Shown: piece by piece, positions 37,801 to 55,800 of the stretch | Numbering within the stretch: position 1 is the stretch's first letter | Layout of the letters: every line of letters begins with the position of its first letter | NCBI GenBank assembly: GCA_964199315.1 | Contig: OZ116704.1 | Coordinates: forward strand, 12,400,001-12,464,000 | Length of the DNA: 64,000 nt | Source: Orbicella franksi | Taxonomy: Eukaryota | Direction: 5' to 3' | Notes under the pieces: model-generated | Told to the model about the DNA's origin: nothing | Database searches by the model: none | What the model saw: the letters and a program-made list of their open reading frames with translations, nothing else | Position numbers and translations under genes: made by a program

Positions 37801-40800
37801 AGAGAGAGAGAGAGCTCCACGAAGCTCTAGGTTTCCTGACCTACCTGGATAAAACCAATTTGTCCATACGTCATAGCAATCAATCTGATGAAGGAGAGAA
37901 TTTGTCAGTACGTAATTATACTGAACGTACTGGAACAAGCCTTCAGCTTGTTTTTGCTCAAAAAGAATTTTTGGTGGGCTTATGTCTGGATAAGGTTTGG
38001 ATTAGATATTTTAGCATTTTAAGCACTTTTCATGAACTCGCAACCTAGATAATAAGCTTGTTTTTGCCTTTTTTTTTTTTTCTTAATGTTCAAAAAAATA
38101 TGTTCAAAGGTTGCTGTTTTCAATGGTCAATGCGCTTGGCTGCAACTAGCTAGTTCACAAGCATGTCACCTAAACTGGAAGGAAGAAATACTTCAACTTA
38201 ACACTATAGGATTAAAAATCTCAACTGGAGGGAGGCAGACCAGTTGGCTATTTACAAGCATGACCGAGGAGTTGAACTAGGGTCTACCGAGAAACAACTC
38301 CAGCTTAGTGGTCAGAGCGGGACTTGAACCCGCGACCTCTGGATAAGTGCAGCACCTTAATCACTCAGCCACACTGCCTCTTCAAAGGAAAACAAATGAC
38401 AAAGGTTGCAACAACTTCAATAATATCATACTTTAAGTTACAGAAATCATGTTTTTTGGTTGTTTTCGAGAAAAATACAAGAGACCTCTAATGAAAAACC
38501 AATAAACCAATAGCGGAGTAGACAGAGCCGACAGCCAATCAAACGGAAACAATCAAGTCTTATCAGGAATGGCAGAAGCTCAAAGGAAGTTGCCAGAGAA
38601 TTAGAAAGTAAGTCTTACGACCAATGTTATTGTTCACGTACCTTTCATTCACAAGTTTGTCATGTTGGGGGTCACGAGGTTTCCTCTTCATAATGTCACT
38701 CTCTGCCTTCTCATATGCCAAGGAGATGGCAGGAACCTTACAGCGCAGAAGAAAGGCAGTAAGAATGGTGCAAGTTAATAAAAACACGTCTAACAGGAAG
38801 TGTCACTCTACCAGAGATCACTTGAGGACATGGAACAAGTATGAAACAAGTTTCACTCGTTAAACACTGTTTGGTCAAAGGGATACTTACATTCATTGAA
38901 CTAGGCATTTTAAATTTACAGTGGAACCCCATTATTCCAAACTCAGGCAAATCCAAGGGGAATGGTTTTAAGTTGGAAGTAATGGGAAATTCAAAACAAG
39001 AAGCTATTTCTCAGAAGGAAATAGTGTTTCGTTTCCGGAAAGATATTCAAAGTCTGAGAAAGGCGGGGGTTTTGATATCTTGTGCATGAGAAGTCCCGGG
39101 GTGAGGGGGATTTGTGCTAATGCGCCGCTACGCCCTGCACTGATCCGCTTAGTTGCCAGAGCCCGGGTTTTTTCGTCCAGGCGAGGTGTAGTAATAAACC
39201 TACCGCAAAAGAGAAAGGGCTATTTAATTTAAGTTGACTGGACAGGTATCAGTTATTACAGCCAATGCACTTTGAAATGTGCTTACTTGTGATACTTCAC
39301 TTTGACTCTGCCCTAGGGGAGGGAGGTACTCCCTTATATCGGCTATATAGGCATGTCCAGCCTCAAAGGGTATGAGGTTTTTTTAAGACATTTATTTCAG
39401 AAATGTAGTGTCGGACTTTTGGTCATTTTCGTCTCACACTGCTGCTTTTTTCATCATTATCGATAAGACCAGCCATTCATTCTGAAACAAGGTAATAATT
39501 TAAGGGTCAGGGGCCCCTTTCTCGAAAGTCCCGGAAACTTTTCGGGCCCGTAAAGCCATTTTTAGTTCGTCTGTATCTAAAAACGGAGACGTGTATACGT
39601 CTGAAACTTCTTGTATGAAGGGAACCTCTCTTCATATTAAGAATATGCGAATAAAACAGCTCAGTAATCGTAAGGTTCGAAGAAAAAATCGCAGATTTTG
39701 GTCTTAAAAGGGCGAGTGCTTTGGGATGCGGGCCTCACAGCCCCACCAAATTTTTCATGAATTCAAAGTATTGTGTGTGAGGCTAAATAAAGCTACGAGG
39801 CAAAGGCATTTGACGCATGATTTTTCCATTTCTGTGTCAGGCAGCACTTGATTCGAATGGATGCAGCACTCTACGTTTTGTTGTCAGTGACGCAGTATAT
39901 AGACCTATATAGGTCGTATTATGTGTGAAGATGACTCTAAAATACAAATGCCATCGGTGTTTTCATGGAAACCAGCTCTTGAAATGCCGCGGTACGTCAA
40001 AATAGAAATTTTATTTTTAAAGCTCGCTCGTAGAAGTAAAGCTACTCGAATTGAGGTGGAAAATTTTATAAATTCAACTAAATCTGGAAAATGATATTAA
40101 GACAACCTTGCGAGAAAGCCATATTGTAACTATTTTGCAGTATATACTAAGGTTAATTAAACGCTAGACTGAGCAGAGGCATGAACACTAGATTGAGGAG
40201 AGGCATGGACGCTAGATTGAAGTTTTGCTATGCAGTAAGAAAACGAGACTTAATTACCATATCAGTTCCCAAGTCAATACAGAGAATGGTGATAATTCCA
40301 AGGGGTTGGGGAATACCGATAATGATGAACATCAAGAATGGCGTGATCTCGGGAATGTTACTGGTCAGTGTGTAGGCGATAGACTTCTTCAAGTTGTCGA
40401 AGATCAAACGACCTGAAGACAAAAACAGATCATATTCATCAAACTGTTATAATACCGAAGCTTATACTTAGTACTTCAGGTCACCAATAACACTCTGAAC
40501 TGTTTTGAGAAACAACAACATGCTTTCAGAAACTCTGCTCTTGACCCAAGAGATTCTAGAACACAATGGTTTGTCAATGTCTTGCTCCACCCAGGTTTGT
40601 GTAACTTTCAACATGTTTTTTTCTCTTTCTTTTTTTTTTTTGGGAGGGGGGAGGAGCTTATAAGCGGAAACAGCCAAATGAAACACAGAGTGACTTTTGG
40701 GCTCAATGTTCAACTGAAAAACGTTTGGTCTCCACTATTTCCTTCTTCATGATGTTGAGTGCAGCCTTATCCAAGGTAGCCTTCTGCACAGACACCCACT

Positions 40801-52800: not shown

Positions 52801-55800
52801 AAATTTTCTTTTTTCAACCAAATTAAAGTTCATTATTTAAGGTAACATTTTTCATGAAAATGAAAATAAAATATTAAAACGTACGTGAGTTATTGGGATA
52901 AAGAGATTTTTAATAAACCATAATAAACCATCAAGGTGTCATAGGGTGCATTTCTTTAAGAAAATCCAAGATTGGATTCTTAAATCTGAAAGAATCCAAA
53001 AACAGATTTTGCATTTCTTTACTTAACAGATCAATCCAAGATCTCTCAGATCATGATTTGTCAAAGAAACCGAAGAATCCACTCTGAAAGTGGCTGAGAG
53101 TGAGAAAATGCACTCAGCAATGACTGCCTTGATTTCTTCGGTGCAGATGCCATTTTAGCACATGTGAAAGCCTGCATTCCCCAGTTCTTTGAAAATGTTC
53201 CAGACGTTTCATGATACTTCGATCTACTGCTTCCATCGCAAGAGGGAAATGAAAACACATCTGAAATCCCAGCATCTTTACTACAACTCAGACGTTTGAT
53301 ATTTTTGCAGGATCTTTCCATTTTCTTTTAGCCTTCTTGTCAAAAGTAATGGTAAAGCAAGATGAGAGTAGGCGGCCAAAGATTGGCCAGTAGCCCACTG
53401 TTTAGTCCTAGCTGCTACTGGCCCTTGTTGCCAAGCCCTTATGTATATCACAATAATTCATAAAAAAAGAGATTGATGGCCCCTAATAATGAGATAGCAA
53501 AGATGGGAATTTTAAAATTGATTCCTGGGTGAAAATATATCAACTAGAAAACCTGCACACAAATAAATCCAATTTTGAGTTACATTGTATTTGACTTTAA
53601 CATGACCTCCACTGACCTGGTAATATGAGAAGCATCCTGTAATAATAACAACTGTGGCAAGAACTATCCCAAGGTAAAGCTGAAAAAGTGAAAGAAAGAG
53701 GTTCACCTCCAGGGTTAAATGCAGTGTTACCCATTTGCACAGCTAGGTGGAAAGAGACAATGTGAAAGTAAACTAGTGTCTTGTTCAAGAGCACAACAGA
53801 TTGATCCACACCTTGGCTTATGATAATTTCTATCCAGGGTCCACAGCAGTAACCATTTAGTGTGGCCATCATGTCCCCTGATTTAAAATGTGGCTACATG
53901 GGAAATTGAATCTCTTTTACAGTACACATACTTTCTGTATTGTATGCATGATTTGGACAGTAGACATGCCGAGTCTGATTGGCTTATAATTTGCAAATTT
54001 GAGTATGGAATGGAGCACAAGTGAGCATAAAGAGTTTGGCATTACAGAAAACCTAGTAGGAATAACCATGGTTTCAAATTGCAGAACAGCACTTTGCAAA
54101 GCAAATAAGAGGAACCAAAAGTATGGTAATAAAAGATCAGTACAGATTAAAACATGGGCAAAATTGGACGCAAGGTTGTTTCTGTATAAGCAAGGCTTGT
54201 GGACGGCAATTCAATATGAAAATAAGCCAAAAATAGCAAACATTGTTTCATGATTGCCAGGAATGTGAAGGACAGATTTATTTCAATAAACACAAAAGCA
54301 GACCTTCACATAGTACATTATTTAAGCCTGAAATACAGTCTTCAGAATGCTTCTAATCACCTTTCAAAAAAGTCTAGTTAGTTATGTACAACAAAAGTTT
54401 CAAGAGAAAAATCTGACCATGATCAAGACAATTTGGGCATGACCTCCTTAAACAGTTTCTCAAAATTTTTGTAAGGTTTATTTTTTATAATTATTACTCA
54501 CATCATCCTTATCTGGTTCCTCCTGTTGAGACACCTTGATTCCGTAAGTGATGAAGCAAAGAAGGGCTCCAATCCACAACAGCATGGCAAAGCCACTAAA
54601 CAGCTGTTTACAGAACTTCACCCACTCAGGGGTAGTGGGTGGTGGTGTCAGAGCATTAGGACCATCACGCGCATGCAGTTCATCAGCCTTTTCTTGTGTA
54701 TGACCCTGCAAATGTAAATTACGATGAAAAGGAGCAAAACAAAGTCAGCATTAAGTTGCATTAAGTCAGCACTGTTAATCTTAATTAAATTACAGTCTGA
54801 TTATTTGCACTAAAAGATGTTATCTTTCAGAACAAATAAACGAAAAAGACATTGAGATATACATATTTGATTTTAGTTTCACAAAGAAACTTTAATATAA
54901 ACTGTTGCAAAGACCCAGTCTCAGTGATACATGTATATTTCACATGACAGACTGTGCTTTACCATATTTCCAAACATGTACAAGTCTCGATTGTTCAAAA
55001 TGTAACAAACAGAGGAGTATTTTTGACAAACTTCAAAGTGTTTGCCAATGTGGTCAACACTGTCTTGAGTGTTTTGTTTATCTTAACAATCAAAACTAAA
55101 ACTTAGGAGAAAACAGAGAAATTGCATTGAAAAAATCAATGCTAATGAAGATCAGATATCCAAACACCTTCACATTGTGGTTATGATTTCCTTTCTTTAC
55201 ATGTAAACTTGATGAATTATAATGATTTTGAGGGGTGCAGTATCCAAACCCTTGGCCTTCCTGATTGTAATGAAGTGTTCTGTCATACATAGAGTGCTAG
55301 CTGTGACCAGAAATTTCTGCAGGCAGTGGCAACCACTGAAAATTACCATCTGGTGTAGTAGTCCTGGTCTTGCTGGCTAGTCTTGAGATTTTTCAAGGTT
55401 CAAATAGAAGCTACTGAGCAGTGATTTCATGTAGCATAGTTTATTTATCTCTGCAAGGTGGTTCTAGCTACTTACCAAGTCTGAGGATGAAAGTTGAAGT
55501 AATATGTTACAAATTCAAATTAAACAACAGGCTTCAATTGCGTTAAGACTGGATAATGCTATCCATTAGATAAATCACTATCCAGTTGCTGTCCTGTGTA
55601 TAGGTGTTAACAAAACAAACCATGTTATTTGCTGGATAGCAGTTTTTCTGGTGGATAGTGTTATCCACCTTTCGAACAACCAGAGCCTGAACAGTAACTT
55701 TTGTGTGGACTGCATTTTTGTACGCTGCGAAACGAGGTTAAGGACTACCTTATTATTTTAAATTCTGGAACTCTTGAGAGAAGAAGTGAATGGTGATTTT

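Follow-up and report, generated by a model that had tools for sequence, protein, structure and literature searches.

Resistant-type sodium-pump paralogs in insects, toads, snakes and rodents are textbook examples of convergent adaptation, each tied to a known steroid toxin. In Leptodactylus frogs, linked resistant and sensitive α1 paralogs are said to carry Q111R/N122D in one copy, and gene conversion reportedly homogenizes the gene for the most part, with selection maintaining the differences at the resistance sites. Rodent Na,K-ATPase α1 (R111/D122) is charged at both borders of the M1-M2 loop, retains pump function and coexists with sensitive isoforms. The ATPα1 paralogs B–D of Photuris fireflies acquired Q111E and T797I after duplication, and a more sensitive paralog was kept (PMC10028858). 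Insect α1 duplicates, for example those of Oncopeltus, are described in two sources as several copies that differ stepwise in their sensitivity to steroids and are partitioned among tissues (PMC9110512; bioRxiv 10.1101/2020.08.28.272054). T797I in the α1 of the mouse OR6 cell line confers 63-fold ouabain resistance (Cantley et al. 1994; PMC13704064).

The stretch of DNA analyzed here (the window) spans 64,000 nucleotides of Orbicella franksi contig OZ116704.1 and contains two intact Na,K-ATPase α genes arranged tail to tail, gene A on the + strand (12313-29964) and gene B on the − strand (from 34818 to just past the window end). We consider it probable that B is an ancient, functional Na,K-ATPase α paralog that sits beside a canonical A in stony-coral-type genomes, with a steroid pocket that was remodeled and then frozen. 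Like rodent α1, B is charged at both M1-M2 borders, but it combines K111/D122 with D119, Q793 and I797, and its companion A has L111 rather than Q111; ouabain resistance has been measured for the rodent enzyme and is predicted for B. The Photuris paralogs and B share a charged residue 111 together with T797I in one duplicate lineage, whereas in fireflies the duplication is recent and linked to feeding on steroid-defended prey, and the coral pair is old (dS > 1), common to several genomes and associated with no known toxin. As in Leptodactylus, the coral paralogs are linked, show signs of conversion and are distinct at the pocket sites; unlike in the frogs, conversion is apparently confined to the P-domain exons (residues ~568–757), synonymous sites are saturated over most of the gene, and the orientation is tail to tail. 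I797 of B is the same substitution as in OR6, although the latter is a laboratory-selected single mutation on a background that already has R111/D122, and B is a natural conserved paralog. Oncopeltus-type duplicates, as far as these sources describe them, are associated with cardenolide host plants and with N122H plus Q111T/V-type changes, in contrast to the K/D borders and I797 of B. The coral pair displays the same signature residues in early-branching animals without known steroid exposure and under purifying selection across diverged genomes. A preliminary description of this DNA knew of no cnidarian precedent, and we likewise found no report of a cnidarian resistant-type sodium-pump paralog in the searchable literature.

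Gene models, family membership and expression

The spliced models of the two genes comprise the following features.

12313..29964, + strand: gene A, canonical-type Na,K-ATPase α paralog (spliced model, GT-AG introns)
34818..64000, − strand: gene B, Na,K-ATPase α paralog (spliced model, GT-AG at all junctions, no internal stops)
63989-64135, − strand: Lys-rich N-terminal exon of gene B, located in L014 and crossing the window end

Gene A is composed of a Lys-rich exon (12313-12466) and 21 further exons, which begin at 12542 and end with the stop codon at 29964. Between 55867 and the stop codon at 34818 the B model comprises 22 exons, and with the N-terminal exon its reading frame is unbroken over 23 exons; the exon with the start ATG was not located in the B model. 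The preliminary description gave a span of 40294-54537, which covers only the stretch between the pocket exons, gene B running from 34818 to the exon at 63989-64135. The two proteins are 79% identical. Across the 497 Mb genome, A and B are the only matches to the M3-M4 exon, and one β-subunit locus (PF00287) was detected on the same contig at 6.687-6.691 Mb, a count that is a lower bound.

The exons of B encode the complete Pfam series in the order Cation_ATPase_N, E1-E2_ATPase, Cation_ATPase, Hydrolase and Cation_ATPase_C, and they gave better E-values against Na,K-ATPase α1, α3 and α4 chains than against gastric and non-gastric H,K-ATPase chains (4e-30 versus 1e-13 to 3e-17, 1e-23 versus 1e-16 to 9e-19, and 4e-60 versus 1e-49 to 1e-54). 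Both A and B keep E327, D369 (within the CSDKTG motif), S775, N776, E779, D804, D808, Q923, D926 and E954 as well as the TGESEP motif, and B ends in Y1015-Y1016 in pig numbering. The catalytic and ion-binding residues and terminal tyrosines that had been read as intact from the sequence alone are all present in the spliced models, and the ion-site residues and tyrosine pair are also kept in the B ortholog L003 where it is covered. With these residues retained, B would be expected still to pump Na+ and K+.

B is transcribed and spliced as modeled in the RNA assemblies of two studies. Five modeled junctions between B exons are matched exactly by RNA contigs from X15 (polyA) and X17, in which the B-specific intron is spliced out. 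The M3-M4 exon of B was found in nine RNA runs from three further studies, and all four exonic variants seen were synonymous. No raw polyA reads of X22 fell on B exons in the 12% of the run that was read, so B expression is not universal.

The extracellular pocket of B

Residues are numbered according to pig α1 (the 1016-residue chain 7d91_A) from PDB alignments, and the offset between the spliced B model and the pig numbering is constant from residue 111 to residue 954. Three exons of B contribute the loops that line the pocket.

54502..54705, − strand: B exon with M1 and the M1-M2 loop, K111, D119 and D122 (pig α1 alignment)
48123..48509, − strand: B exon with the A-domain end, M3, the M3-M4 loop (L310, V312, F314) and M4 with E327 (PDB chain alignment)
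40258..40412, − strand: B exon with M5, the M5-M6 loop (Q793, I797) and M6 with D804 and D808 (PDB chain alignment at 759-809)

The M3-M4 exon also carries G307 and E309, and residue 884, D in the reference, is E in B. All eight residues by which the pocket of B had been distinguished map onto pig α1, but A is not mammalian-like throughout: its pocket has L111, P119, N122, W310, E312, V314, L793 and T797, and given L111 and P119 it appears to be only approximately sensitive-type. In flies, Q111L with a change at 119 lowers sensitivity ~7-fold (PMC13704064).

Where a survey across Anthozoa had been proposed, B orthologs turned up in no fewer than five further coral-like genomes. Residues K111, D122, Q793 and I/V797 are not peculiar to this genome but are fixed over the whole B clade (L003, L006, L007, L013, L010 and fragments), with K111, D/E/S119 and D122 in all fragments and loci. 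All 8 B-type fragments combine Q793 with I797 or V797, and of the 90 pump fragments parsed, 69 have L793/T797. The M3-M4 loop (307–314), to which L310, V312 and F314 belong, is hypervariable within the B clade, and five of five B loci lack E312. The A-clade orthologs L008, L011 and L012 share the pocket states of A, except that L011 lacks W310. The B clade is further marked by an intron:

50162..50929, − strand: B-clade-specific intron after the Q160 codon, splitting an exon that is single in A (comparison of B and A loci)

This intron is present in 6/6 B-clade loci and in 0/5 others (four A-clade loci and L009). Support in the tree is 100 for the A clade and 90 for the B clade, with L009 poorly placed (55–63), and the convergent A(+)/B(−) arrangement on one contig recurs in two other assemblies, three genomes in total. 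Judged from these comparisons, B is an old paralog across deeply diverged coral-like genomes (dS > 1) rather than a recent or lineage-specific adaptation. The earlier interpretation of the pair as a sensitive-type copy and a resistant duplicate therefore stands in part: B is real, intact and transcribed with a resistance-type pocket, but it is neither recent nor confined to one lineage, and its partner is sensitive-type only approximately.

Purifying selection on B matches that on A in strength (ω ~0.05 for both; 0.04–0.08 for B-B pairs and 0.03–0.05 for A-A pairs, dS > 1). Fixed differences comprise 20 derived in B versus 17 derived in A, so that B as a whole has not diverged further than A, and 13 derived changes fixed in B sit in cytoplasmic domains. 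Fixed A/B differences are enriched 4-fold in the three pocket loops (6/30 versus 45/771 positions; Fisher p = 0.009), though part of this enrichment is general, since even among A-clade sequences variability is higher in these loops than elsewhere in the protein (odds ratio 2.2, p = 0.06).

The substitutions in B fall at experimentally validated resistance sites, namely 111 with 122, 797 and 793. Published ouabain resistance is 63-fold for T797I, 79-fold for T797V, 60-fold for Q111K/N122E, 100- to 1000-fold for Q111R/N122D, 8.8-fold for L793K and 60- to 50000-fold for engineered charged 111/122 pairs (PMC13704064 Table 1), values that are not simply transferable to B because substitution effects depend on sequence background. 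In the Drosophila pump, T797I alone is lethal and T797V sharply lowers activity (PMC10028858). No published test of the exact K111/D122 pair or of L793Q was found in the searchable literature. From the published effects of T797I and of charged 111/122 residues, B is predicted to be insensitive to cardiac steroids. In the proposed mechanism, the outer-face cardiotonic-steroid pocket of B would have been remodeled and then frozen: K111 and D122 put charges on either side of the M1-M2 loop, the threonine hydroxyl that hydrogen-bonds the steroid is missing with I or V at 797, Q stands in place of L793, and E312 is gone. By analogy with sheep, mouse and fly mutagenesis, ouabain-type binding to B is predicted to be lowered by at least two orders of magnitude. 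A keeps a near-canonical pocket, and the pair would hence consist of one ligand-accessible and one ligand-blind pump.

Alternative origins of the pocket changes

The pocket changes might be a by-product of specialization of B for a cell type or extracellular milieu (calcifying fluid, symbiosome lumen or gastric cavity), or for K+ affinity, voltage dependence or β-subunit contacts, with steroid insensitivity incidental. We regard this as possible, if somewhat unlikely. The whole outer vestibule of B differs beyond the classic sites, as seen in the free variation of the M3-M4 loop and in E884, and the changes fixed in cytoplasmic domains and the polyA library without B reads, which fits restricted expression, point the same way. 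We know of no cardiotonic steroid source on reefs, and literature searches found none. However, the frozen residues 111, 122, 793 and 797 are those with the largest known effects on steroid binding, and substitutions of T797 lower pump activity in other backgrounds, which makes a neutral by-product unlikely; the one β-subunit locus detected, itself a minimum count, argues against a separate β partner.

A second alternative, which we think unlikely, is that charged M1-M2 borders are ancestral, that A changed toward an uncharged, ligand-accessible loop, and that B is derived only at 793, 797 and 312. R111/E122 in L009, a cnidarian-like pump equidistant from A and B, and in fragments P0362 and P0382 suggests that charged borders may predate the duplication. 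Derived fixed changes are about equally numerous in the two copies, those of A often falling at sites where B agrees with L009 and bilaterian pumps, and A has L111 where bilaterians have Q111. Against this, N122 is found in 7/8 outgroup sequences and Q111 in most, and the position of L009 in the tree has poor support.

The preliminary description had linked B to palytoxin, and B might be a pump resistant to palytoxin or palytoxin-like polyols that shields corals against toxins of zoantharians, Ostreopsis or Symbiodiniaceae. Palytoxin targets the pump from outside and is in competition with ouabain (PMC2217460), which is circumstantial support. The habitat shared by corals and palytoxin producers is circumstantial as well. 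Ouabain-resistant rodent pumps nevertheless stay palytoxin-sensitive, and the charged 111/122 borders of rodent α1 are not known to afford protection. The searchable literature identified no palytoxin-sensitivity residue, a Palythoa comparative-genomics preprint is silent on the sodium pump, and conservation of B over deeply diverged genomes is at odds with a link to a particular exposure. We found no support for the palytoxin link and consider it very improbable. Neutral decay of a redundant B drifting under relaxed constraint would fit the freely varying M3-M4 loop and the RNA library without B reads, but it is contradicted by the intact frame, correct splicing in RNA, low ω over dS > 1 equal to that of A, key pocket residues invariant across orthologs and solely synonymous observed variants, and is exceedingly improbable.

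For a B that was remodeled and then frozen, selection could have come from a toxin, from an endogenous ligand or from an unusual extracellular milieu. We tentatively raise the rather doubtful proposal that ligand-accessible A and ligand-blind B are kept as a two-pump system because the holobiont produces or encounters a ligand of the steroid pocket, for which an endogenous steroid-like regulator and a polyol toxin from dinoflagellate symbionts or reef neighbors are candidates, with B securing ion homeostasis in exposed cells. Literature searches on exposure of stony corals to pump-targeting toxins identified no such compound. If this proposal were true, control of the sodium pump by ligands, or defense against such control, would reach back to the base of animal evolution. 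If B proves insensitive, the resistant/sensitive duplicate pattern would extend to Cnidaria, an undiscovered pocket-binding compound in reef holobionts would be indicated, and the pair would offer a natural matched system for the endogenous-ligand question, namely what accounts for the strong conservation of the ouabain site among animals (PMC11193536). Studies of coral physiology use ouabain to block the pump, and such experiments would be incomplete if one isoform were resistant.

Candidate gene conversion between A and B

Two regions of elevated similarity between the paralogs were found.

A side 21983..22197 (+ strand), B side 43963-44178 (− strand): candidate gene-conversion tract 1 (nucleotide identity, dS)
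A side 24402..25106 (+ strand), B side 41209-42135 (− strand): candidate gene-conversion tract 2 (identity, dS)

Sequence appears to be exchanged between A and B in P-domain exons, in tracts that stop short of the pocket exons; the evidence comes from short exons of a single genome, and the hints from a second are weaker. Conversion would homogenize the P-domain exons while the pocket exons lie out of reach of the tracts. The earlier suggestion that B is kept distinct despite gene conversion agrees with these signs of conversion and with the sparing of the pocket exons. Tract 1 covers the exon for residues 568–629 and flanking intron bases with 91% identity over 216 nt; its dS is 0.37 versus > 1 or saturated elsewhere, and at third codon positions the two paralogs of a genome resemble each other at least as closely as orthologs do. 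Tract 2 takes in the exons for residues 665–757 together with the next intron, which contains a box C/D-like element, and does not extend to the M5-M6 pocket exon. Its identity of 84–89% reaches into the introns, with dS of 0.26–0.57, and in the exon for residues 725–757 the third-position identity is 0.85 between A and B of the window versus 0.61 between A orthologs.

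Gene models and pocket residues

Six-frame comparison identified two sodium-pump exon sets in the window (contig C7, 12.400–12.464 Mb), at approximately 12–30 kb on the plus strand (gene A, the canonical-type Na,K-ATPase alpha paralog) and at approximately 56–35 kb on the minus strand (gene B, the paralog with the altered steroid pocket). Spliced models were obtained by optimizing each junction against two guides, the other copy and the full-length pump P0048 as reference. Both models, which do not include a small start-codon exon, have an open reading frame throughout, and all introns are GT-AG.

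Coding exons of the two sodium-pump genes
12313–12466, +, Lys-rich exon of gene A (spliced model)
12542 to stop codon 29964, +, the following 21 exons of gene A (spliced model)
55867 to stop codon 34818, −, 22 exons of gene B (spliced model)
63989–64135, −, Lys-rich N-terminal exon of gene B, crossing the window end (found with the next 10 kb of the contig)

The two genes are convergent, with stop codons 4.8 kb apart, and encode proteins of 79% identity (776/983 aligned positions). Their exon boundaries are identical except for an extra intron in B (50162–50929) and a length difference of 3 bases. The exons of B match the Pfam families Cation_ATPase_N, E1-E2_ATPase, Cation_ATPase, Hydrolase and Cation_ATPase_C, and an H,K-ATPase identity was ruled out, as they score higher against Na,K-ATPase than against H,K-ATPase structures. 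A search with the M3-M4 exon found no alpha copies beyond A and B in the 497 Mb genome. Window DNA is present in sequencing runs labelled with four coded organism names and in others labelled 'coral metagenome'. The sole genome locus matching PF00287 (Na,K-ATPase beta subunit), a count that is a lower bound, is positioned outside the window at 6687652–6690797 (+) of the same contig, at a distance of 5.7 Mb from the A/B pair.

Aligned to the 1016-residue pig alpha1 chain, whose numbering is used here, B carries K111, D119 and D122 in the M1-M2 outer loop, L310, V312 and F314 in the M3-M4 loop, and Q793 and I797 in the M5-M6 loop. The offset between the B model and the pig chain is constant from 111 to 954, B terminates in Y1015-Y1016, and E327, D369, S775, N776, E779, D804, D808, Q923, D926 and E954 are kept in both A and B. 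The pig alpha1 alignments and residue table therefore bear out the preliminary description in its account of the B pocket substitutions and of intact ion-site and catalytic residues; the interval it assigned to B spans just the part encoding the pocket, in a gene at least 29 kb long, and A is not of mammalian type at every site, since it has L111 and P119. The sequence observation itself is right, and is stronger than was first appreciated.

Conservation, expression and constraint of the B paralog

Relatives were collected by fragment searches with three B exons followed by contig retrieval from ENA metagenome-style records. Five further B-type loci (L003, L006, L007, L013 and L010) and three A-type loci (L008, L011 and L012) were retrieved, together with L009, a pump equidistant from A and B. 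B is thus not peculiar to this genome. A profile search of all libraries with the M3-M4 exon yielded fragments for the most part, with no B-type protein at full length among the matches. For L006, the match projected onto the M5-M6 exon had a low score, was judged spurious and was masked.

In all B-type loci and fragments K111, D122 and Q793 are invariant, while position 119 is D, E or S and position 797 is I or V; A-type sequences retain L111, N122, L793 and T797. Among 90 parsed M5-M6 fragments, 69 have L793/T797, and Q793 is found in 8, all of them B-type; Q793 in the outgroup P0025 was ruled out as a misalignment. The extra intron is present in 6/6 B-type loci and 0/4 A-type loci and is absent in L009, and the convergent arrangement of A (+) and B (−) on one contig recurs in two other assemblies. 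A maximum-likelihood tree recovers the A clade with support of 100 and the B clade with support of 90. The nodes joining A, B, L009 and bilaterian pumps have support of 55–63, and for this reason A and B are not claimed as sister clades.

The M3-M4 loop (307–314) is variable in B, with W, L or P at position 310 in five B loci and T in a single B-type fragment. None of the five B loci retains E312 (V, T or Q instead), and B-type fragments have S there. The W-L-E/D-A-V motif is kept in the A clade and in most animal pumps. On a contig of ERZ25067557, W310 is lost in both paralogs (L in the A ortholog L011, P in the B ortholog L006), so in this species the loop shows parallel change in the two paralogs.

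RNA-assembly contigs from two studies (libraries X15, polyA, and X17) connect exons of B, with five junctions placed exactly as in the model.

B junctions found in RNA contigs of X15 and X17
46840/46911, −, exon junction
46984/47546, −, exon junction
47687/48123, −, exon junction
48509/50027, −, exon junction
50161/50930, −, exon junction that splices out the B-specific intron

The four exonic differences in the B RNA contigs are all synonymous, and the whole M3-M4 exon of B is present in nine RNA-recorded runs from three further studies. B expression is real, and the splicing in the X15 and X17 assemblies removes the possibility, raised in the preliminary description, that B is unexpressed. 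Expression is probably not universal: of the raw polyA reads of library X22, with 12% of the run read, none fell on B exons, which is taken as no verdict on that sample.

Pairwise dN/dS is 0.04–0.08 for B orthologs and 0.03–0.05 for A orthologs, at dS of ~1.0–1.8. For the two species pairs with both copies, dN of A versus B is 0.061 versus 0.069 and 0.047 versus 0.050; given this near-equal protein divergence, B is overall as constrained as A. A pseudogene or a copy under relaxed constraint is ruled out by the open frame, RNA splicing, dN/dS and synonymous variants. Fixed differences between the clades occur at 51 positions (20 derived in B, 17 derived in A and 14 ambiguous), of which 6 fall among the 30 pocket-loop residues, a 4-fold enrichment (Fisher p=0.009). 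Part of this enrichment is general, because within the A clade, too, these loops vary somewhat more than other parts of the protein (odds ratio 2.2, p=0.06), and one A ortholog, L011, has lost W310. Positions 111, 122, 793 and 797 show one shift, after which they were frozen in the B clade, and the M3-M4 loop was released to vary in B.

Predicted steroid binding and alternative explanations

Ouabain fold-resistance values for comparable substitutions are from pumps of other species (Table 1 of a 2026 review, PMC13704064). For the M1-M2 loop, Q111R/N122D confers 100 to 1000-fold resistance, Q111K/N122E 60-fold, Q111K/N122K 5000-fold and N122D 10-fold; for the M5-M6 loop, T797I confers 63-fold resistance in mouse alpha1, T797V 79-fold, T797A 67-fold in sheep and 264-fold in fly, L793P 24-fold and L793K 8.8-fold (PMC13704064). 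T797 is described as stabilizing the bound steroid by donating a hydrogen bond, and Q111E together with T797I arose in Photuris firefly paralogs (PMC10028858). These effects are background-dependent, since in the fly pump T797I is lethal and T797V reduces activity (PMC10028858). B combines insensitivity changes of three independent classes, each of them conserved, and its affinity for ouabain-type ligands is predicted to be at least 100-fold below that of A. Q111L/A119S has a ~7-fold effect in flies (PMC13704064), and A, with L111/P119, may have a slightly lower sensitivity than mammalian alpha1.

B is an old, conserved and expressed paralog with a frozen pocket of putatively resistant type, tail to tail with A. 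It extends the known class of sodium-pump duplicates with altered target sites to a phylum from which, it seems, no example has been published; in agreement with the preliminary description, the searchable literature yielded no account of sodium-pump paralogs or of substitutions in the steroid pocket for cnidarians. Two retracted papers on vertebrate pump epistasis were disregarded. According to a review that emphasizes the conservation of the steroid site, the hydra pump is inhibited by ouabain (PMC11193536).

An alternative is that the charged loop is ancestral and A is the changed copy. This is favored by L009 and the two fragments P0362 and P0382, all of which carry R111/E122. In L009 (ENA ERZ25066852, 1.13 Mb contig; M1-M2 exon at 8317–8523, with several exons fused) this rodent-like charged pair occurs, yet L793 and T797 are kept. 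Charged M1-M2 loop borders may be widespread among cnidarian-like pumps. The altered pocket of B could also reflect a non-ligand specialization of the outer vestibule, or escape from regulation by an endogenous ligand. The link to palytoxin drawn in the preliminary description found no support here, and a Palythoa comparative-genomics preprint contains nothing about the sodium pump.

Candidate gene conversion and other features of the window

In most exons, dS between A and B exceeds 1 or has reached saturation. It is low in the exons encoding residues 568–629 (dS 0.37), 665–723 (0.57) and 725–757 (0.26), where the third-codon-position likeness of the window A/B pair equals or exceeds that of orthologs. 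In exon 725–757, third-position identity is 0.85 for the window pair versus 0.61 for A orthologs, and in exon 568–629 the most alike pair is L011 (A) and L006 (B) of another genome, at 0.87. Nucleotide similarity between A and B extends into introns only at the candidate conversion tracts, positioned on the A side at 21983–22197 and 24402–25106. The second tract stops ~200 bases short of the M5-M6 pocket exon, which has no excess similarity. This pattern suggests that conversion is tolerated in the P domain and not in the pocket exons, and the B pocket exons are apparently shielded. The evidence comes from short stretches, so the earlier proposal that B is kept distinct from A despite conversion gains suggestive support from tracts that spare the pocket exons.

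Tract 24402–25106 contains an intronic element common to both genes, of ~85 nt with box C/D-like motifs (ATGATGA ... CTGA ... GTGATGA ... CTGA) and with no Rfam match at gathering score. It is found at 24925–25008 and 26038–26123 (+) in A introns and at 41307–41392 (−) in the homologous B intron, the latter with 96.5% identity to the second A copy. Another A intron has a tRNA-like Rfam match at 19559–19631 (+; 34.9 bits). The adjoining and partly overlapping stretch 19601–19734 can be aligned at 76% with an intron of B (related B stretch 38212–38339) and resembles a short interspersed repeat of tRNA origin.

The first long B intron contains a retroelement at 56710–62076 (+), antisense to B, which accounts for the G+C rise at 56–62 kb and for the 8 kb length of this intron. 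It is bounded by 300-nt direct repeats of 99% identity (56710–57009 and 61777–62076) and has three open frames (57514–58800, 58643–60580 and 60577–61521), the second matching reverse transcriptase and the third a tyrosine recombinase ('Phage_integrase'), a DIRS-like make-up. Upstream of A, an open frame at 1954–2358 (+) matches the Tektin family (E=3e-20) and marks a tektin gene.
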